Below are positions 6,113-55,285 of a DNA stretch of 64,000 nt, in pieces (the stretch's first letter is position 1; every line of letters starts with the position of its first letter). Location: positions 1-64,000 of the forward strand of contig JBNJNM010000019.1 in the NCBI GenBank assembly GCA_052426225.1. Direction: 5' to 3'. Source of the DNA: Zancudomyces culisetae HAW-14-8. Its lineage: Eukaryota > Fungi > Kickxellomycota. The translations under genes and the position numbers were made by a program. Below the pieces are notes generated by a model that saw only the letters and a program-made list of their open reading frames with translations, searched no databases and was not told where the DNA came from.

Positions 6113-7453
6113 ATGACAGACTGGCTCGGTTTAGCTTATCCAAAAAACGGAACTGATGAAGAAAAGGCTTATTATTTTGCAAAAATAAAAGAGTTTGAAG
6201 ATGAAACTAGGCTAATGTATGAAAAAGAGGGCCCAAAAGTATCAAATTGGACACTTCAAAAGCATATTACTGTCGACAGGCTAAAAAAAGTGGTCATGTT
6301 GACCAAAAGAACAAACACTGTGTTCTATACCGAGGAAAATTTTGATGCTGAAGAGCTGGGGAAAAACTTTAAAGTTATGAGAAACTTAACATCAAATGAG
6401 TTAAGAAAAAGCGATGAAGGAAAATATGCGAGTCACAATTGGGTAGTTGACATTGATGAAGTTTGTGACGTTAAAAAGATAGTGGATAGGATACCTATTT
6501 TTGCAGAGTTGGTGTCCAAGGATAAAAGTGAAAAGAATGGCGGACACGGACTCAGAACACACTTTGCAGAAGTCGTGGCATCCAAAAAAATCATAGAAAG
6601 CAATGGTGGCGAGGAAAAAGGATTATCATTAAACCCGCTGGACAAAGACGAAGTTGTTATCGTCCATTATCACGGGGGTGGATACTGCATGATCACACCC
6701 GGAGCGTATCGAACCACAGGGATAGAGCTCAGTAATCTGACTAATCATAGAGTTATTTTGCCATACTACAGACTCGCACCAGAAAACCCATTTCCAGCTC
6801 CAATATATGACGGATACATGTTTCTTAAGTATCTACACAGCCTTGGATATAAGCAAAAAAATATAATTTTATTTGGGGAGAGTGCCGGGGGAAATCTCGT
6901 TCTAGAACTGCTGCTTGTCTTGGAAAAGCTTGGCGAGCCACAACCCCGAGCATGTATTTCATTCTCTCCCTGGGTCAATCTTGACATCACTACTGACAGC
7001 TGGGATAGAAACAAGAAGTACGATTACTTGACGTCCATTCCACTGGATTTTGTGTTTAACACATCTCGCATGTATGCCGCTCCTGGAAAATCGCTTGAGG
7101 AGGCAAAAAGTGTGTTTAAAAATCCATTCGCCAGTCCAATACATGGAGATTATTCGTTTCCTGAATGTGCGCCTATCTACCTCATTAGTGGCGAGCTGGA
7201 GCTTTTGGTTGATGATATCGACAATTTCGCCTCAAAATATGGGGTTAAACCTACTGTTATCAGTGGCAGGAAACATCCTGGGTTTGATTTTTCCCTTATT
7301 ACCGACAATGATGCTGAGCATACCCATAGAAAAAAAATCATTTATGAAAAGTATGTGGGCATGATACACACCTTTTTTATTTTTGATGAGGCTGATGAGA
7401 AGCACGCGTTTATGGATGGAGTCAAAAATTTTCTTGATTCGTTACAAAAATAA
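6113..7453 (+). CDS. Alpha/beta hydrolase, hormone-sensitive-lipase (GDXG) family esterase
   Basis: HGGG oxyanion motif, YRLAPENPFPA, GESAGG nucleophile, GMIH catalytic His; first ATG at 6113. Confidence 0.9.
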   Translation: MTDWLGLAYPKNGTDEEKAYYFAKIKEFEDETRLMYEKEGPKVSNWTLQKHITVDRLKKVVMLTKRTNTVFYTEENFDAEELGKNFKVMRNLTSNELRKSDEGKYASHNWVVDIDEVCDVKKIVDRIPIFAELVSKDKSEKNGGHGLRTHFAEVVASKKIIESNGGEEKGLSLNPLDKDEVVIVHYHGGGYCMITPGAYRTTGIELSNLTNHRVILPYYRLAPENPFPAPIYDGYMFLKYLHSLGYKQKNIILFGESAGGNLVLELLLVLEKLGEPQPRACISFSPWVNLDITTDSWDRNKKYDYLTSIPLDFVFNTSRMYAAPGKSLEEAKSVFKNPFASPIHGDYSFPECAPIYLISGELELLVDDIDNFASKYGVKPTVISGRKHPGFDFSLITDNDAEHTHRKKIIYEKYVGMIHTFFIFDEADEKHAFMDGVKNFLDSLQK

Positions 7454-8308
7454 ATGACTTCAATTCTTTTTTCTAGCATCACCCTATTTCAAATACAATC
7501 TGTTTGTCCTTATATGACCTTCAAAAAATATATGGATTTATTCAATACAGGAAGATAGGTGTTGCACTTTGAAAATGATATTTCCTGTCAGCCATTTGAT
7601 TTGGGGTTTGTGAACAGACAAACGTTAGTGATAACTAATACAATATAGTAGCATGCAGGATGTGGAATCTTTCAACCAACCATGTGTACTTGTAGATATA
7701 TATAATTATAAAGAAGGCATTTATGTGATGGGGTTTCAATATATCCTCTTCCCCAAAGAGGTTATAATCAACCTGAAATAGTTTGAACATCCATACTGGC
7801 AAATTGACTCTCAAAAATACACAAATTAGTACTTTTGAGAAAAAGATTTAATTTTTCTGCAGCGTTGTTACAGCTATGGGCCGCGCGCACTAATCAAAAA
7901 GTTATTACCATTTTTCCAAGCAGGCTTTATTAATCCGAGTAGCGTAAATAGTAATGGTGTAAATAATAAACGAAGAAAAAACTATGTACCAAAATCTAAA
8001 CGACATAATACATAATCAAACCAGATTTTAATATATGTGTTTCGCCAGCTAAAACGAAATATTGAATGTTGATTCCAAAGACATTAACATTATGATGTCT
8101 ACTAAAAATTAGAAAAATACAGAGGCTTCCAAGTTTCCGTTGTCAGAAAATAATAGACCTAACATGATGTTACGATGTGAGAAATCGAACAAATTTTTTT
8201 GAAAAGAAAAACATCCCAATAGCTAAGAACTAAAAACTAGTCTTTAATCCCATAAAAAATTAAAAAATGTTTGAATAACTAATACATATATACAAACTTT
8301 TTAAAAAA

Positions 8309-8546
8309 GTCGTAAAGTAAACTATACGAAAGAGTTGTCCCAATTTTATTGGTTAGATAAATAGATGTATGTTATATAATTAGCTAAATATGTTTATTGT
8401 GAATTAATTAATAGATCGTTCTTTTCCTCAGATAGATAATAGTATAATAATTATATATTATTAAAAATTGACCCGTCCAGTGTAGTAGTTGGTAGCAAAA
8501 GGTACCAAGTGGAAACTTAAATATTCTTACAAGTTTGCAAAAAGTG
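8309..8546 (+). promoter_or_regulatory. Conserved ~240-bp tRNA upstream element, copy 1
   Basis: Collinear with the reverse complement of 34000-34238; shared blocks include GTAAACTATAC, AAGAGTTGTC, CAATTTTATTG, GAATTAATTAATA and TGACCCGTCCA. Function is inferred, not shown. Confidence 0.6.
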
Positions 8547-8618
8547 GCCCGGTTAGCTCAATGGTAGAGCGTGAGGCTTTTAACCTCAAGGCTGTGGGTT
8601 CGAGCCCCACATCGGGCG
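8547..8618 (+). tRNA. tRNA-Lys(TTT)
   Basis: Cloverleaf: acceptor GCCCGGT/ATCGGGC, anticodon arm GAGG-CT TTT AA-CCTC, T-loop GGTTCGAGCC; T-run terminator follows. Confidence 0.97.
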
Positions 8619-9327
8619 TTTCATTTTTGATTTTTATGTATTTTATTCTTTTATATATTCTCAGTTTACGTTTCATATTTCTGATTATGTAAGGAAAAAA
8701 GTCCAGTCTCAGGTGCAAAAACAAAAAGCTAAGGGAATTATTTAGCAAGTTCGTACATATCTGTGGCCAGAATTTTTATATTCGAGATTGAAACATTCTC
8801 TATGTTGACTATTTGAAAAGTAGGAATGTGTGAATCTAAGCCACAATTTATGTATTGGAGTGTTCCTTTTAGTGTGTCTCGTGCTACGGTGTGTGTTTAG
8901 GTAAATTGATAAAAATATATTCTCGTGGATGTAATTTACTTTTTTTGCACAGTATTTACTAAAGTAGCCAAGAGGTCATTAAATTTGTTCCTTTACCTGG
9001 GATCTTTGTATTCTTCAATATTGTTTAATGCGCCTTATGTTTTACTAGGTTGGTCGCATAATTACTAAAATTCAGTAGAGGCACCACCAAGTAATTTATT
9101 GTTTAGTATGACCAAAAATAACATCGGACTCTCAAAACAGTGGCGTTTAAAGCGTTGAGAAATTCTTTGAATTACTTAAAAATGCAACCAATATTTTTTG
9201 ACCACTAAAAGCAATTGAGAATAAACTTTAGTATATTGAATCTTGTAAATTGTAAATTGTGTATTGTATTTATAAATTCACCTTTGAGTTACAATTCGAT
9301 GTTAAATCTTAGTATAATATACAGAAA

Positions 9328-11443
9328 ATGATTTCTATAATATTGGTCTGCGCCGTCTGCTGCCTCATAACGACTATATACCTACTTGGTAGATACGGAG
9401 ATTTTAGCAGGTTCAATTTTCTAGTATGGTTTTTAGTAGAACTCGGTTGGTTTTTGCCTTCTACGGTGATATTTTTGCTTCCTTTCGATATAAGTTCGGT
9501 AAGTATATGGAAAAAGGAAAATAATCGCTGTACATGTGAACATTTGAAATTTAGCTATAAACTCAACAACATACACAAATCGCGAATAGAGTATATACAG
9601 GAATTGCGATGGTAACTGTGAGAAACCATGGGGCTATCTGAAACTAGATCATTTCCGTCAAATTTGGAGAATCGTTTATTGGATGATATTTGTATTAACA
9701 TGGTATGTGTACTTTTTTTTGTATAGCTTTGTTCCCTCTTGAACTCTTCATCTTTGTGCATTCTTGATAATTTCTCTATAGTGTTTAATTATTCTAATTT
9801 GGTGGAGAAACTTAATAGTAATTATTTATCTAACGCACTAGAGCATTAATATTAATGATATATATATATATTCACATATATACAGGCTAGTTCTTCCACT
9901 ATTAAAAGAATATGTAGACTCTGGACACCTTGCATACGTGGATAAAATTAAAGATTCTTTCAAGATTAACATAAAGTATTACTCATATCTGTTGGTGATT
10001 ATTATACTACTTGTAGTTTTTTTAATAATCGAGGGTCTACTAGAATGGTAAGTGTGTTATTTTTATCTTTATTTTCTGTTAGATTTAAATTTCATCCATG
10101 TTTTTTATTATCTTTTTTTTGTCAGAAAAAGCAAAAGAATTGCACACATTTTGAACTTGGATACTGAATAATCTATTCTTAATAGGAAAAATTTAACCGC
10201 TGTTTCCATGGCAGTGGCAAATTTGTGGGGAATGTTCATGATTGTAGGTTTTATGGGTGTTGGGCTGGTAAACATCCCTCGAAAGATCTGGATGAGATCA
10301 AATATTGAACTAGAAATATTAGAAGTAGAGGCTCGTGCGTCTGAGTTAAAGGATAGATATCATGATACTGAAGCAAAAATATCCGAGTATATACAGGAAT
10401 TTGAAAGGTTTAGCTTGAGAGCCCATCCAACTGATCCTGAGTACCCATACTGCGTAATAATTAAACAAGAAAACCATGAGACTATAAACAAATATGGTAG
10501 ATGTGCCAGTATGGGAAGAAACGAATGGGTAGAATCAAGTGGTCAAAACTATCATTCACATCCTCAGAGTAGAGACGACAAGGCAATTTCGAAAAATCTT
10601 ACAAAACTAGCTAAAATAAGAAGCAAACTCGTTTATAGAAAGCTAAAACTAAAGTATCTGACACGTGCTATCAAAGAAAATACTAATGCAGCTCTTCTCC
10701 TACAGGATATCAGAGAATCCAAACAAAACAACTTGCGCTATGTTCAAAGCTCAGTCCCCTTTATTGCCAGATGGCCAATGTGGCGAAGAAAAGCAACATT
10801 CTTCTGGTATCTTTATATAAGAACATATCTATATAAAATTGCATCTGTTTTTCTGGGCTTACTCGGTGTCCTGATACTACAATCGGAATTTATATTTACC
10901 ATAAGTCCTGATTTCACATTTATAAGTCTGCTGTTTAATAACGTCTTTACCACTGACTACTTTGTTATTGAATTGCTGTCTGTTGGACTAGTACTTTATA
11001 TGTGTATTAGTATCTATTTGTCTGTCACAAATTTAAAGCTATTTGGCATAAAAAGTCTTCGACACGCTCACAGCACTACGACAGGAGCACTAGTCATCTG
11101 TGGAAGTCAACTTTGCAGACTCCTGATACCACTGTGCTATAACTTTCTCGCTATTTCAAACATCAATGAAGGGACAGGGTTTTTAGCTATTATGGGAAAA
11201 ATCAACGCTGTTCCCATCCTTGGTATTGCAATCAATCAGTACATTCCGTTTATAGTTCTTTTGCCTGCCATTCTTACTTATACTAGAGCTTATGGAAGGA
11301 TTGCCTCGTTGTTTAAGCCGGATGTTGACAGAAGACCTGACCTATCATTACTATCTCAGCCTTCTGAAAGCGTATACGAGGGAAGAATCTTAATTTCGCG
11401 ACAAAGGGCCGCTTTGGAAAGAGGTCAAGAACCCATCGTATAG
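9328..11443 (+). CDS. LMBR1-domain multi-pass membrane protein (LMBRD2-like), about 4 exons
   Basis: LLPFDISS, WRIVYW, ANLWG..MG.GLVNIPR, QLCRL.IPLCYNF motifs joined by GT-AG introns. Confidence 0.85.
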
Positions 11444-32802: not shown

Positions 32803-33917
32803 TTTCTCGGTTTACTATGGCGTTTTTTTATTTATTTTATGTTGTTATATTTTGTATTGTGTTTATTTTTTTGCCGATTTTAAATTATTTAGAAAATGAA
32901 AAATGATTGCGTAATTAAAGAGCCAATTTGTAGATTCCAATTTGGCTTAAAAAAAATTAATACAAAAAAAAACGTATTCAATAGCTAGAAAATCTGAAAA
33001 TGGAAATTGACACTGGTGCTGGCTGTTTTCTATGGCTCTGGTTACAGGTGTGTGATGGAACGCTATATTAATTGTTGTTAATGTTGCTCTGTTATTCAGT
33101 TTATTTAATCAAATATTTCTTATAATAAGTGTAGTTATAATATATACTTCATCCTGAATAAAGAAAAAAAGATTATCATTCATCTTTTTGGTCCCATACC
33201 ATCCTTTATGTGTAAAACGTACACTCGGGCAGTTGTATAAAAATCACATTAGGACGTCTAAATAATTGTAATTCATGAAATCAAGGGCGCTTAGTGGATG
33301 AGCAAAAATTATTCATTCACACTGACCTCCAAATATATTCTACTTGACTGTATGATGTAAATATATAGTAGATGTTATTAGTTATCTGATACACCTCTCA
33401 ACTAATGTGATGGCTGAGTTTGGTATAGACTGATTATGTCAGTTATACTCAGATCTCGGATCACTTCACTAGTTCTGATTGCTGCTATACGAATGTTCGA
33501 ACTATATTTACTATTGAATAATAATAATAAATACCAAGTAAATTAAATCAAATAATAATTACTAGAAGTACTGGATATATATATAAACGTAATGTAAAGT
33601 ATATTCGGTTAAGAAAGACTAAAGATATTTCTTTTCGATGTCCCCTCTCGATATATTCGGTTTGCTATTCACTTTACTGTCATAGATCGTTTATACTATT
33701 TATCCCGCTTGCTCTCATTGGTGATTATCTTCCGCTCAGAAATCGCGATTGATTCGTTGGCAAAAAGGATGTAGCCATTATACTACTATGTAAGAAAATC
33801 AATAACGGGTGAGACTATGGAAACCCACACACTAGTCAATGTTTGTTTTAGTAGACTAGACAAGGTTGTTATGTATGTTTTGCAACCATAAACAAAAGAG
33901 AAAAATTGCAAAAGGAA

Positions 33918-33999
33918 TCCGAGAACCCGGATTTGAACCAGGGACCTAGAGATAACAGATTGACTACAGTCTCCCGCTCTACCGCTGAGCTATTCTCGG
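33918..33999 (-). tRNA. tRNA-Tyr(GTA) with a 10-nt intron (33954-33963)
   Basis: Acceptor CCGAGAA/TTCTCGG, anticodon GTA, intron TCAATCTGTT at the canonical 37/38 position, T-loop GGTTCAAATCC. Confidence 0.96.
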
Positions 34000-34238
34000 A
34001 TATTTTTGTTTTTTTGTAAAAATATATAAGTTGTAACTATATACCTTTAATATTATGTCCTATATTGGACGGGTCAGTTTTAATAATATATACATATGTT
34101 ATACAATTATTTATTATAGGAAAAGGCCAATTTATTAATTAATTCCATTCAAACATAATTATGATAATTCTATAAAATGCATAAATTAAACTAATCAATA
34201 AAATTGAGACAACTCTTCAGTATAGTTTACTATACGAC
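34000..34238 (-). promoter_or_regulatory. Conserved ~240-bp tRNA upstream element, copy 2
   Basis: Reverse complement aligns collinearly with 8309-8546. Confidence 0.6.
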
Positions 34239-36077
34239 ATTTGTTATTTTTTTTTTTAGACTTTAACTTTTAATATCTTAAAATATACTTGAACTTTGTC
34301 CTATTCTCTTACTGTACTAAATATTCGTTAATATTGTTATTATTAACTATTGAATATTAAGTATACTGAATAAAAAAACTTATTACTACAATTTGTTTAT
34401 ATTAAAGATATGTTTAATTTTGTTATTTCAAACACGTTAATACTTTTACTGCTTACTTAAAGTTACTAGTAAAACTATACAAAGATACATAAACTTTACT
34501 ACTGAAAGTTAAAGATAAATTTGTATCTACTGTTTATAACCTGTAATATAAATCATAATACTAATTAAAAACATTCGATTAATAAACTAAACTGTTTCAA
34601 GGTATGTCTTGGTTTACTATATTACAATTTTTGTTAGACCATTTATTAATCTAGTCTATCTGGTTCTACTAGAGGGGTGACATCACTAGAATGGGTTTAA
34701 CCCTTTTTAACTAGTTACCACTTTCTAGTTATACTTAAAGCGGAGCTGGTACATTTATATGGGTATAAATTGACAATTTATTAATTTTTAGAGCCATAAT
34801 TTTTATTTTAGTAAATACATATTTTTTTATGATATTAAAATAGTCTTTACTAAAAAGTATTGTTAATTCTGGTACTATCACGCCTTAATGTTTTCCGCGG
34901 TTTAAATCATTTTTCTTAAACAAAGCAACTTGTCTATATTTGAAATGGTTAATCTACATTTTGATCAACCTATAACTAAATACAATACCCATTTCTTTAC
35001 AATTTTATATTACAAATTGAATAAAGTTTGGAAAAATAAGCTGTACATGTATATATTGAACTTATCATCTTTACATATCATTAACATAGTTGAGGGTTTT
35101 CACACTTGCGGAGAGACTTTAGTGTCTATATGAAACGCTTTGTGTTCTGAAAATAATGTGAATGGCCCCAGTGATAGAATAACAAAAGAGTAAAAATAGT
35201 TAATATATTTGATTTCAATAATGTCAAATATTCAAATCTGATTGTGCAACCTGTCACGTAGTACAAGCTGTGTTTGTATTTTTAGACTAGGATGCTGTAA
35301 TATGTTATTGAATTGTGCATATAAATATTTCTTTTCGAGTATTATAAATGATAATCCAAGTTATTCATAAACTTTAAGAACAAACGATGATGTTGCCCAT
35401 AGACGATTACTCTTCTCACTATTCTCTAATAAAAGTTCAAAAATATAATTTGTGATATTACAATTTTATGAAATGGATTAACAACAAGATAAAATCAAGT
35501 TTGTATTTAATTTGAATCTTCCACGGTTTCAATTATAAATTTACTTCAATTCAACTTTGCGTATTTTCTCAAATCATTTTGAAATAAAACACAAAAAAAA
35601 TGAGTGAAAAAAAAATTTTCGATTACAAATTAGCAAATTCTCAAATTCACATCTAATTTGCCGAATCCTATTCGCAAGAATTGAATTACAAACCGGGTTT
35701 GAGCAGAATTCAGTAATTTACTTGATTGAACCTTTCTAGGCATTTAAAATTTTCAGCTATATATTATTATTACTATTATTATTATTTTATTAATTTTTTT
35801 ATTTCAATTTTCATTTAATATTTATAGTAAAACCAAAAATTAGCCACAAATAAAGCTCAACTAAGAGAAAGAGAGGGAAGTAAAAAATAACATTAAAAGA
35901 GATAGGTCACGAGCTTGATCTATTTGATTTAAATTAAAAATACTATACAAATTGAATGAAAAGAAATACAGAACAAGTACAGAGTGGACAAGAATCAAGT
36001 GATCCATATATTTCAACATCTCAGTAATAATATAAGGGAAATAAAACGGGTGTGAGAAATCGAGAATCTGATCCAAA

Positions 36078-51667: not shown

Positions 51668-54600
51668 TTAAGGCTGAGCTCCGTGAAGCATTTGTGTTGG
51701 CTTTGGTTTTTCAGGATGGTGACAATGAAATTCAGTAACAAGATACTTTGCATTTGCTAAGTCAGAATATGTTTGCCAGGTACGTTCAGTGTCTGGGTAT
51801 CCTTTCCAGTGTACCAGGTATTTGACAGTTCTACCAAATATTTTACTATCTAGGATTTTCTCAACTTCATATTCTTCTTGGCCATAAATAATCACAGGTA
51901 GAAGTGGTTTTGATGGTCTGTCTGGAATCAGATCTGGTTTACAAGGTTCAAGGAGATTGACGTGGAATACTGGGTGAATCTTCATTGTGTGTGGTAGCTG
52001 GAGTTTGTATGATCTTTGTCCAATCTTTTCCAATACTTTGAATGGGCCAAGTTTCCGATAGTCAAGCTTCTTGCTTGGTCTTTGAGTCCTGATGTTTTTA
52101 GTTGAGAGATAGACAAGATCACCAATGTTGAAGTCAGGTTGTGATGATACTTTTCGGTTGTAGTATTTCTCATGGTCTTCAAGGGCAAGGGAGATGTTAA
52201 ACTTCAGTTCTTGATGGATATCAGATAGTAGTTTGGATCTATCAGAGGAAGCAGGATTTAAAACTTGAGTACGAGGAATTGTGACTGAGAAGCGTGGATG
52301 GAAGCCATAGTTTGCGTAGAAAGGTGTGGTCTTAGTAGAAGCATGGGATGTGTTGTTGTAGGCGAATTCGGCAATTGGTAACCACTTTGACCAATCAGTT
52401 TGTTGGTAATCAATGTAGCACCTGAGATACTGTTCCAATACTGAGTTTACGCGTTCAGTTTGTCCATCTGTCTGAGGATGGAATGCGGTGGACATTTTCT
52501 GTTCAATATTCAGTGATTTCATTAGAGTACGCATGAATGATGAATTGAAGGTCACACCTCTATCAGATACGATGTCTTTAGGGAGCCCATGTTTGCAGAA
52601 GACATGTTGGATAAACAGATCTGCAGTACCTTCAGCATCAATTTCATTGGTTGTGGGAACAAAATGCGCCATCTTGGTAAGGCGATCCACAAATACACAG
52701 ATTGCAGTAAAGTTATTGGATGGAGGTAGCTGAGTGATGAAGTCGACAGAAACAGATGACCAAGGTGAATCAGGAACGGGAAGTGGAGCGAGGTAGCCAT
52801 ATGGTTTATGGCGAGAGGATTTGTTGCGTTGACAGGTATCGCAACCAGAGATGTAGTCTTTGATATATTTTCTCATGGTTGGCCAGTAAAAGTTGCGAGA
52901 TACAAGTTCGTATGTCTTTGCATTTCCAAAGTGGCCGGCAGCAGGGGAATCATGGCATTCAATCAGGATAGTTCTTTTGATGTTGTCGTCCGAGGGGATA
53001 CAGATTAGTCCATCATAGTGCAGAAGATTGTCAACAAGAGTGTACTTTTCATGAGAATCAGGTTTCTTGGATAAGTCAGTGTAAATGGGTCCAAAGTACG
53101 TGTCTTTGGGTTGTAGTGACTTGATGTTGTTCATGAGCGTGGATGACAAAGGTTCAACAGGTGTACTAGTCATGGACTTCAAGAAGATTTCAGGAGGCAG
53201 CAAAGTTATTTTGTTTTGGTCAGTACGGGAGTCACCCCCCTTCCAAGGTTGGTCTTTCCGAGAAAGAGCATCGGCGGCAGTGTTCTGTTTTCCAGGGCGG
53301 TACTTGATGACAAAGTTGAAGTTACTGAGGTATTCTGACCATCTGACTTGGCGGCGACTAAGATTTCTGGTAGTGGAGAAGTATTCCAAGTTTTTATGGT
53401 CGGTCATAACAACGGTTGGGTGTACAGAAAATTCAAGGTAGTGACGCCAGTGAGCAAAAGCGTCGATAATTGCTAACAGTTCCTTATCATAGATTTGATA
53501 ATTCACTTCAGCAGGCAGGAGTTTCCGGGAGTAGTATGCAACAGGGTGGAGTTGTCCCTCGTTGTCATACTGGCTGCAAATGGCACCTAATGCAAAATCT
53601 GATGCATCGGTTTCGATGATACAAGGCTGGTCAGGATTGTAGTGAGCTAAGACTGGGTTACTGATCATGGTTTCTTTTAGCAAGGCGAAAGCTTCTTCAG
53701 CTTTGGGTGTCCACTGGAATTGAACACCTTTTTTCAACAAGGCGGTGAGTGGCAGAGATATCTTGGAGTAGTTCAGAATAAAACGGCGGTAGAAGTTTGT
53801 AAGGCCAAGGAATGCCTGAACGTCACGGACACAAGTTGGTGTCTTCCATTCGGTGACGCTGGATACTTTAGATGGATCCATAGAGATTCCGTTGGGGCCA
53901 ATTACAAAACCGAGGAACTGTACTGATTGTACATCAAACTCACATTTCTCTAGCTTGAGGGTGAGATTGTGTTCCTGAAGCTTCTTCAAGACAAGGCAGA
54001 CGTGGTCATAGTGCTTATCGATATCATATGAGTAGATTAACAGATCATCGATGTACACAACAAGGAATTGATCAATGTATTCACGGAAGAGATCGTTAAC
54101 AAAGGACTGGAACGTGGCTGGAGCATTCGTAAGGCCAAACGGCATGACCTTATACTCGAAGTGGCCGTAGCGTGTACGAAACGCGGTCTTCCATTCTTCA
54201 CCAGGCGAGATCCTGATCATGTGGTATGCGGATTTCATATCCAGCTTGGTGAATATCTTGGCTTTGCCAAGCCGATCCAAGGTTTCAGAGATGAGTGGCA
54301 AGGCTGCACGGTTGGGGACAGTGATCTTATTCAGGGCTCTGTAGTCGACGCACAACCGGAGACTACCATCTTTCTTTTTTACAAATAAGACGGGAGCCCC
54401 AGCCGGGGATTCAGAGCGTTGGGTAAAACCATTAGCTAGGTTTTCCTGGATGAGGTCATACAGGGTCTTTAGTTTCAATTGGGAGAGGTTGTACAATGGG
54501 CCATATGGAATTTTGGAGTCAGGAAGCAAAGGAATGGTATGATCATATGGACGATGTTCAGGCAGTTTGGCAGATTGGGATTCAGAGAAGACAGATTCAA

Positions 54601-55285
54601 ACATTTTATACTTTTCAGGGATTACAGGAGTAACAGGGTTTTTAAGAGAAGATTCAGAGACAAGACAGAGATTTTCACAAGATTTAGGAGCTACAAGAGA
54701 TTCAAGATTGTTCACGGTAATTGCACCAGCATAGACAGTGTCTGGTGCCTTCAGATGTTCTTTAAACTGGTTTGAGCCCACAAGAGAGATGTCTAGGTTG
54801 ACATGGTTGGGCCCACAAGAAGTCAAGGTACAAGGCAGATGGACTATGTTCTCAGTCCAGTTGATGTCAGGATTGTGTTGTTGAAGCCAGGAAAGACCAA
54901 GGATGATTGGTGAAGATCCAAGATCTATTTGTTGCAGATAGATACTTTTGAGATGGTTATCATTGATTTTTAGTGTTACTTGGGAGGCAGAGTTGGATCT
55001 AAGCTTTGATCCGTCAGCGAGCGTGATTGTCATTTTTCTAGATATAGATGGTAGATTGTTTTTTAGAGCAAAGGTGGCGTCAATGAACGAGGACGAAGCA
55101 CCAGAGTCAACCATAGCGTAGGTTTTGATGTGATGGTGCTTGGTCAAGATGGTTACAGGAATGATCAAGATGTTTGGTTTATCAGGAGATTGGGTGTCAG
55201 AAACAGGAGTGGTTACAGTGGCGTGGGGACTGGCTAAGTTGCCCAATAGGTGTCCCTTACTGTCTACTGGGCGGTGTCGTTTTCC
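51668..55285 (-). CDS. Gypsy Pol: protease, RT, RNase H, integrase, chromodomain (open frame)
   Basis: MVDSGA, YIDD, TDAS, HDSPAAGH..CDTC, SDRG..QTERVN, YEVEKIL..YLVHWKGY. Confidence 0.97.
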   Translation of the reverse strand, partial: GKRHRPVDSKGHLLGNLASPHATVTTPVSDTQSPDKPNILIIPVTILTKHHHIKTYAMVDSGASSSFIDATFALKNNLPSISRKMTITLADGSKLRSNSASQVTLKINDNHLKSIYLQQIDLGSSPIILGLSWLQQHNPDINWTENIVHLPCTLTSCGPNHVNLDISLVGSNQFKEHLKAPDTVYAGAITVNNLESLVAPKSCENLCLVSESSLKNPVTPVIPEKYKMFESVFSESQSAKLPEHRPYDHTIPLLPDSKIPYGPLYNLSQLKLKTLYDLIQENLANGFTQRSESPAGAPVLFVKKKDGSLRLCVDYRALNKITVPNRAALPLISETLDRLGKAKIFTKLDMKSAYHMIRISPGEEWKTAFRTRYGHFEYKVMPFGLTNAPATFQSFVNDLFREYIDQFLVVYIDDLLIYSYDIDKHYDHVCLVLKKLQEHNLTLKLEKCEFDVQSVQFLGFVIGPNGISMDPSKVSSVTEWKTPTCVRDVQAFLGLTNFYRRFILNYSKISLPLTALLKKGVQFQWTPKAEEAFALLKETMISNPVLAHYNPDQPCIIETDASDFALGAICSQYDNEGQLHPVAYYSRKLLPAEVNYQIYDKELLAIIDAFAHWRHYLEFSVHPTVVMTDHKNLEYFSTTRNLSRRQVRWSEYLSNFNFVIKYRPGKQNTAADALSRKDQPWKGGDSRTDQNKITLLPPEIFLKSMTSTPVEPLSSTLMNNIKSLQPKDTYFGPIYTDLSKKPDSHEKYTLVDNLLHYDGLICIPSDDNIKRTILIECHDSPAAGHFGNAKTYELVSRNFYWPTMRKYIKDYISGCDTCQRNKSSRHKPYGYLAPLPVPDSPWSSVSVDFITQLPPSNNFTAICVFVDRLTKMAHFVPTTNEIDAEGTADLFIQHVFCKHGLPKDIVSDRGVTFNSSFMRTLMKSLNIEQKMSTAFHPQTDGQTERVNSVLEQYLRCYIDYQQTDWSKWLPIAEFAYNNTSHASTKTTPFYANYGFHPRFSVTIPRTQVLNPASSDRSKLLSDIHQELKFNISLALEDHEKYYNRKVSSQPDFNIGDLVYLSTKNIRTQRPSKKLDYRKLGPFKVLEKIGQRSYKLQLPHTMKIHPVFHVNLLEPCKPDLIPDRPSKPLLPVIIYGQEEYEVEKILDSKIFGRTVKYLVHWKGYPDTERTWQTYSDLANAKYLVTEFHCHHPEKPKPTQMLHGAQP

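Follow-up and report, generated by a model that had tools for sequence, protein, structure and literature searches.

A 64,000-nt window of the genome of the fungus Zancudomyces culisetae HAW-14-8 (positions 1 to 64,000 of contig JBNJNM010000019.1, assembly GCA_052426225.1) contains a tRNA-Lys(UUU) gene and a tRNA-Tyr(GUA) gene that are preceded, at the same distance, by similar blocks of DNA. This block is very probably the long terminal repeat (LTR) of a family of LTR retroelements, left as a solo LTR at both tRNA genes. We are equally confident that the Lys and Tyr LTRs are independent insertions at two different tRNA genes. The original prediction, made from the letters of the window, had offered several explanations for the shared flank, among them a tRNA-targeting retroelement comparable to Ty3. 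That alternative is essentially right, because the block has TG...CA ends, a target duplication and an insertion point at a set distance upstream of tRNA genes, and because a primer-binding site (PBS) and a polypurine tract accompany it in related elements.

Solo LTRs upstream of two tRNA genes

The collinear homology of ~240 bp that had been noticed 5' of the two genes is real. The blocks at 8308-8539 (+ strand) and 34239-34007 (- strand) align at ~78% identity, and a search of the 27.1-Mb genome with the Lys block as query recovered the Tyr block with E = 2e-39 (78% over 224 bp), a similarity far above that of AT-rich sequence by chance. The 5' edge placed at 8309 lies within 1 bp of a sharp repeat boundary, and the tRNA bodies and 3' flanks are non-homologous, as had been stated. 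The motifs named at the time (GAATTAATTAATA, CTTTTCC, TATATATTATT and TGACCCGTCC, the last at 8469-8479) were all found, also in other members of the family. The extent given for the blocks, 238 and 239 bp, was right as to homology but not as to length: the true unit is 232-233 bp and stops at 8539 and 34007, exactly 7 nt short of each tRNA. The features of the two sites are as follows.

8304-8307, + strand: AAAA, left-hand copy of the 4-bp target duplication around the Lys-side LTR (from flank identity, weak by itself at a site within an A-run)
8308-8539, + strand: solo LTR of 232 bp, an old copy of the 234-bp 'A' LTR family (semi-global alignment)
8540-8546, + strand: 7-nt spacer AAAAGTG from the LTR end to tRNA-Lys, made up of the right duplication copy AAAA (8540-8543) and GTG
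8547-8618, + strand: tRNA-Lys(UUU), integration target (ARAGORN and Rfam, 73 bits)
33918-33999, - strand: tRNA-Tyr(GUA) with intron, integration target (ARAGORN and Rfam, 57.8 bits; Rfam bounds)
34000-34006, - strand: 7-nt spacer AAAATAT from the LTR end to tRNA-Tyr (by the Rfam tRNA bounds)
34007-34239, - strand: solo LTR of 233 bp, an older copy of the 'A' family (semi-global alignment)

For tRNA-Tyr, ARAGORN gives the Rfam bounds plus one base on each side, and the Rfam bounds were used for spacing. Natural copies served as references, and the young reference copy was L011:1500-1733. Compared with it end to end, the Lys-side LTR is 84% identical, with the first base changed from T to A and an end in ...GCA, and the Tyr-side LTR is 78% identical, with the start TGTCGTATAG and an end in ...AAACA. 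The terminal dinucleotides are AG...CA in the Lys copy (first base mutated) and TG...CA in the Tyr copy. The flanks of the Tyr-side LTR, CAAA and AAAA, agree at 3/4 positions.

BLAST similarity to young copies breaks off 14-15 nt short of both tRNAs, because the last ~30 bp of the window copies are strongly diverged. A reading in which the LTRs are cut off at 8531 (Lys) and 34015 (Tyr), 14-15 nt from the tRNA, was rejected in favour of full-length copies on account of the end-to-end alignment, the length of 232-233 bp, the AAAA duplication and the re-use of this AAAA on contig C21 (described below).

A dispersed repeat family with retroelement termini

A search of the whole assembly with the Lys block returned at least 42 matches on 9 contigs, nearly all of them starting from query base 1. 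Few of these copies adjoin a tRNA, and the expectation that the block would be confined to the neighbourhood of tRNA genes was not upheld. The copies are dispersed and show graded divergence, with 76-100% identity to the young copy. The family unit, seen in ~30 copies, is ~234 bp long and has TGTCGT...ACGACA termini, that is, TG...CA within a 6-bp terminal inverted repeat; copies viewed together with their flanks show a start TGTCGTATAG and an end CACGACA. The first bases of full-length copies are TGTCGTAT and the last ACACGACA. Exact 4-bp target duplications flank A-family copies at C19:8308 (AAAA), C6:342389 (AAAG), C8:996463 (CAAC) and C13:1629447 (AAAT), and one copy of a related B family. 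Neighbouring repeats, which likewise start with TGT and end with ACA, often adjoin the family copies at 3-5 bp. In 20 family loci, no Rfam RNA genes other than tRNA genes were found.

Since the TGTCGT/ACGACA termini are inverted repeats, they would also suit a DNA transposon or a miniature inverted-repeat transposable element (MITE) with short terminal inverted repeats, and the position of the window region within a large segmental duplication would suit a one-off duplication or gene conversion between tRNA flanks. Such origins are extremely improbable given the number of dispersed copies and the paired direct copies that flank a PBS and a polypurine tract in the elements described below. Moreover, the Lys and Tyr copies differ by 22%, the segmental duplicate by only 0.7%, and no transposase-like or MITE structure was seen.

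Linkage to tRNA genes and stacking of elements

Linkage to tRNA genes was scored for the 18 copies with at least 9.8 kb of downstream sequence read, or read up to a tRNA. In fifteen, a tRNA gene of matching orientation (Lys, Tyr, Val, Arg-CCU, Arg-ACG, His, Leu, Thr, Ile and Ala) follows at 7 bp to 13.6 kb, and in no case (0) did a tRNA on the opposite strand come first. The chance expectation for this linkage is <10%, a rough estimate that assumes a few hundred tRNA genes per 27 Mb (63 were scored). By ARAGORN and Rfam, a tRNA touches the repeat at the query locus alone among the first 30 loci, and four more have a tRNA 0.6-0.9 kb off. Direct contact in the loci read is confined to the Lys and Tyr window blocks and their duplicates on C21, where the Lys one carries a 6.56-kb insert.

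Between the family copies and the tRNA lie other LTRs and gag and pol sequences of Ty3/gypsy elements, mostly in the orientation of the tRNA. In the loci read, the similarity between repeats stops at -6 to -9 in front of 12 of the 14 leading tRNAs (11 anticodons). Elements of many families therefore enter at a single point a few bases ahead of the tRNA, displacing the older ones outward; the window LTRs are insertions that nothing has displaced since. The LTR ends that adjoin tRNAs differ between families and have no common motif beyond the terminal ACA. The Tyr locus is itself a three-layer LTR stack, in which the distal 'AT-rich island' at 34243-34776 consists of two more LTRs of other families.

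34243-34626, - strand: second LTR, of another family, ~385 bp, directly upstream of the Tyr-side LTR (edges approximate); this family has at least 15 genomic copies at 87-89%
34632-34776, - strand: third, short LTR-like repeat of a further family, ~145 bp, at the outer end of the Tyr stack (edges approximate)

At one family locus (L036 2624-2700, C6:342623-342699), a repeat that starts with TGATTG directly follows a family LTR with a clean AAAG duplication and holds a tRNA-like T-arm, GGCCCGGGTTCGAATCCCG. Neither ARAGORN nor Rfam called a tRNA at 2624-2700, and an Rfam E-value search of L036 2560-2860 was empty; the repeat may be tRNA-derived or a pseudo-tRNA sequence.

Empty and filled states of the tRNA-Lys site

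Contig C21 holds a second copy of the region, in which the tRNA-Lys site has been filled. Window positions 6734-8545 and 8539-10157 match C21:2309000-2319000 at 99.3%, and 6.56 kb is extra on C21 only. C21 also has an intact duplicate of the Tyr stack and tRNA-Tyr, at 99%, and the collinear duplicate extends over at least 28 kb (window 6734-34800 against C21:2309000-2343507), the 6.56 kb at tRNA-Lys being the sole difference seen. Either a paralogous duplication or an alternative haplotype could account for it. Contig C19 starts at window base 1.

The insert starts right after the old LTR (...GCA AAA), and its end reads ...ACA, an A-run, GTG and then tRNA-Lys. It is composed of an LTR, a complete element and a further LTR, kept apart from each other by AAAA; over the whole stretch from the old LTR to tRNA-Lys, the spacers are AAAA or AAA. 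The complete element has 100%-identical 465-bp LTRs, its own PBS, and gag-PR and RT-RNaseH-IN open reading frames (ORFs); its pol lacks a chromodomain and has as its best match among solved structures the Ty3 Gag-Pol (7q5b, E = 2e-116). The window locus is the state before these insertions. The C21 insertions went into the AAAA that separates the old LTR from tRNA-Lys. A single tetranucleotide, at about -7 to -4, has therefore served as target again and again.

The filled site also bears on the proposal that the block is a gene-external promoter for RNA polymerase III (Pol III), an insulator, a cassette resembling the proximal and distal sequence elements (PSE/DSE), or a cassette into which tRNAs are recruited. 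Such a cassette would account for the same distance from two unrelated tRNAs, and the last 30-40 bp of the block, where transcription factor TFIIIB would be expected, are A/T-rich in both window copies. It is nevertheless highly improbable. On C21 the block lies 6.6 kb from a tRNA-Lys that is still intact; most of the genomic copies lack a neighbouring tRNA or any other RNA gene of Rfam, and their distances vary over 0.6-14 kb, an outcome that the original prediction had itself named as refuting; and the TG...CA ends and target duplication, together with the PBS and polypurine tract of relatives, belong to a retroelement. Other tRNA-Lys(UUU) and tRNA-Tyr genes have different upstream sequence: among six 73-bit tRNA matches the block occurs only at the window tRNA-Lys(UUU) and its C21 duplicate, and other LTR families lie upstream of other tRNA-Tyr genes. 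Finally, the GC-rich core of the block, part of a hairpin conserved in the family, has decayed in both window copies, as described below.

A non-coding miniature element with the same LTR

A complete element bounded by LTRs of this family was found at C12:944624-945689 (L033 6625-7690). Its two LTRs are 97-99% identical to the young reference copy, and its 1,066 bp comprise 234-bp LTRs and a 599-bp inside, in the order LTR, PBS, 599 bp, polypurine tract, LTR. The PBS, TGGTGATCCAGCCAGGAC, begins 1 nt past the 5' LTR, and a G-rich polypurine tract stops 3 nt ahead of the 3' LTR. All 18 of its nucleotides are complementary to the 3' end of tRNA-Arg(ACG), namely the last 15 nt and CCA; the same 15-mer terminates 10/10 of the 61-bit tRNA matches, and the single one of these that was read (L042) is tRNA-Arg(ACG). 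No ORF above 39 aa occurs in the internal region. Related small elements, with insides ~70% identical, lie at about eight more places.

The 1.07-kb element is a non-coding LTR element of the type of terminal-repeat retrotransposons in miniature (TRIMs), primed by tRNA-Arg(ACG). As no copy coding for gag, PR or RT-RNaseH-IN was found in the loci read, the LTR family is filed as a non-autonomous dependant and not as an autonomous Ty3/gypsy (Metaviridae) element. Small elements that carry the A-type LTR on one side and a different LTR on the other, all with precise LTR-PBS junctions, are the following.

L031 1418-2410: miniature element with mismatched LTRs
L032 1165-2170: miniature element with mismatched LTRs
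L035 7830-8900, - strand: miniature element with mismatched LTRs

In these pairs, an A-type 5' LTR is combined with a 73%-related B-type 3' LTR, or the 5' LTR of another family with an A-type 3' LTR. The pattern points to frequent recombination among stacked elements with PBS and polypurine tract regions in common.

A hairpin in the LTR

The 'GC-rich core' TGACCCGTCCA (8469-8479), which the original prediction had singled out as common to both blocks, contains the basal 5' arm, CGTCC, of a hairpin. In young copies, this CGTCC (inside TGACCCGTCC) pairs with a GGACG 33 nt downstream, and the interior consists of a 7-nt bulge followed by a 9-bp stem, TACTTGGTA/TACCAAGTA, that closes a short loop. 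The hairpin occupies LTR positions ~168-210 (e.g. L042 164-206, L031 2361-2402 and L031 5695-5736), and the TATA-like run TATATATTATT lies directly upstream of it. Two other LTR families have the same hairpin architecture with different stem sequences.

8474-8516, + strand: decayed LTR hairpin remnant, with the basal 5' arm CGTCC kept and the 3' arm GGACG mutated

Pairs were counted in an alignment of 15 copies from three LTR families and the two window copies. Of the hairpin cells, 93% are paired, compared with <=45% when the 3' partners are slid. In the upper stem, 6/9 pairs are changed on both sides, and the covariation score was reached in 0/500 shuffles; as the copies were chosen by a pattern that demands the basal stem, the independent evidence is that of the upper stem alone. 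The hairpin is probably in the R/U5 part of the element transcript or cDNA, where it may serve strand transfer, packaging or 3'-end formation. The window copies have both lost the 3' arm and much of the stem to decay, which argues against a function of the core for the host.

Proposed origin of the shared upstream blocks

We propose that elements of the 234-bp LTR family integrate ~4-8 nt upstream of the first base of a tRNA, in the orientation of the tRNA. Their integrase would read the pre-initiation complex of Pol III (TFIIIB/TFIIIC) at the tRNA gene, and the 'position-locked' character of the homology would follow from a distance to the Pol III gene that the integration machinery measures, which places the end of both LTRs 7 nt from the tRNA. 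By analogy with Ty3, the internal part may then be lost through LTR-LTR recombination, leaving solo LTRs. The chromodomain-less Ty3/gypsy elements with which these same tRNA-anchored stacks are filled would mobilise the miniature elements in trans, and the hairpin, again by analogy with Ty3, would act in the RNA or cDNA (R/U5) of the element and not for the host.

Several observations weigh against the reading of the blocks as LTRs of a tRNA-targeting family. Over their last ~30 bp, the two window copies agree with young copies at only ~50%, and the 3' ends at 8539 and 34007 rest on global alignment, the 7-nt rule and a duplication within an A-run. A clean 4-bp duplication is missing at many stacked copies. 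The LTR pairs are mismatched in 3/4 small elements that carry the A-type LTR, and no coding (autonomous) copy with this exact LTR, nor a trans-mobilising partner, was found in the loci read. Candidates for such a partner, with matches to the PBS leader, lie at C6:1398953, C6:1405030 and C21:1076381, and C21:1720800-1729800 is a candidate autonomous relative. Genome-wide copy counts are lower bounds, and the tRNA association comes from 18 of at least 38 loci. The tethering of integrase by TFIIIB/TFIIIC is itself inferred by analogy.

One alternative accepts the transposon origin and adds that the tRNA-proximal 30-40 bp of the LTR have been co-opted as TFIIIB site and start-site context, maybe under selection. 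Because elements insert at about -8, the native upstream region of a targeted tRNA gene is lost, and at all leading tRNAs in the loci read the sequence from about -8 outward stems from an LTR. The derived A/T-rich 3' end AACTTA.ATATT.TTACAA, common to both window copies and found in no other genomic copy, would fit such co-option; on the other hand, an old subfamily, which is the simplest reading of this shared end, or AT-biased decay explains it more simply, and the tRNA-adjoining LTR ends vary by family. That LTR 3' ends have been shaped as a TFIIIB-binding and start-site region, which would keep the target active and re-hittable, is thus conceivable but unlikely, and co-option as a whole is similarly doubtful. 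If it were true, the 'promoter cassette' would be half right, as a portable Pol III upstream region supplied by a parasite, and the A/T-rich end unique to the window copies would be a trace of such selection.

Related elements downstream of tRNA genes

A further LTR family of ~445 bp, with the ends TGTAGTATAA...TATATTACA, is found on the other side of tRNA genes. Its position in 6/7 copies read is 28-153 bp downstream of a tRNA, with the orientation of that tRNA; the seventh is the 3' LTR of a full-length element in L048. One further copy of this family, in L042, lies 914 bp downstream of a tRNA.

33355-33796 of the window, - strand: LTR of ~445 bp, 121 bp downstream of tRNA-Tyr, not part of the shared upstream block
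L048 940-6810: full-length element of the ~445-bp family
L047 5613-5990: copy of the ~445-bp family
L038 151-585: copy of the ~445-bp family
L043 2468-2914: copy of the ~445-bp family
L042 5298-5691: copy of the ~445-bp family

The full-length element in L048, which begins 28 bp past tRNA-Ile, codes for gag-PR and RT-RNaseH-IN and lacks a chromodomain; between its pol and the pol of an upstream-targeting element, identity is 54%. Close relatives therefore show two opposite preferences for the sides of a tRNA gene.

The window also contains, at 51668-55246 (- strand), a 1,192-aa pol ORF with the domain order PR-RT-RNaseH-IN-SH3_Tf2-1-Chromo, that is, a chromovirus. This pol is 29% identical to that of the tRNA stacks and has no tRNA nearby, and it offers a contrast group for targeting.

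Relation to known systems and implications

Integration just upstream of tRNA genes is a behaviour already known from Ty3. As in Ty3 and the sigma solo LTRs of Saccharomyces cerevisiae, the elements of the stacks are chromodomain-less Ty3/gypsy elements with gag-PR and RT-RNaseH-IN, a narrow window just upstream of tRNA genes is used, and solo LTRs lie at a fixed distance from unrelated tRNAs. Ty3 uses initiator tRNA-Met as primer, whereas the primer here is tRNA-Arg(ACG). In further contrast to Ty3, the window family is known only as solo LTRs and the non-coding 1.07-kb element, and many families share the site, building kilobase stacks. The insertion point of Ty3 is 1-4 bp upstream of the site where Pol III starts and lies ~15 bp short of the 5' end of the mature tRNA (PMC5006619), as against an LTR end 7 nt from the tRNA and a 4-bp duplication at about -7 to -4 in the present elements. 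The tethering of Ty3 integrase by TFIIIB/TFIIIC (PMC5006619), for which 7q5b is the structure of the Ty3 intasome with TFIIIB, is the basis of the analogy drawn above.

Dictyostelium DGLT-A and Schizosaccharomyces japonicus Tj1 are also LTR retrotransposons found a short fixed distance upstream of tRNA or other Pol III genes (PMC5006619, PMC4600332), DGLT-A at 13-33 bp (mean 15) upstream of tRNA genes (PMC5006619). They share with the present elements the fixed short upstream distance and a compact host genome; the host lineage differs, and the likeness drawn here is one of pattern. The overall pattern is thus likened to Ty3/sigma, DGLT-A and Tj1 (PMC5006619, PMC4600332, PMC5911963).

The miniature element resembles TRIMs in its 234-bp LTRs, its ~600-bp non-coding inside with PBS and polypurine tract, its length of ~1.07 kb and its presumable mobilisation in trans. 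TRIMs have mostly been described in plants and animals. They are not known to be tied to tRNA genes, whereas the element described here inherits tRNA-gene targeting and, unlike TRIMs, has mismatched LTR pairs in three of four copies. Type-3 Pol III promoters (the PSE/DSE of U6, 7SK and tRNA-Sec genes) have in common with the block only an upstream sequence at a constant distance from the gene. The block itself is a mobile repeat, mostly situated away from Pol III genes, and the tRNAs it precedes are canonical (58-73 bits). Searches of the literature turned up no paper on such tRNA-targeting elements in Harpellales.

What appeared to be a new type of Pol III promoter gives way to a well-supported ordinary explanation. 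In Zancudomyces culisetae, a chromodomain-less Ty3-like clade targets tRNA genes with unusual precision, at ~7 nt from the mature 5' end and thereby closer than Ty3 or DGLT-A, and a non-coding miniature family with a tRNA-Arg(ACG) primer hitch-hikes on this Ty3-like targeting specificity. The 99.3% duplicate offers a natural comparison of an empty with a filled site, and the opposite target sides found within pol proteins that are this closely related make these elements a good system in which to map what sets integrase targeting.

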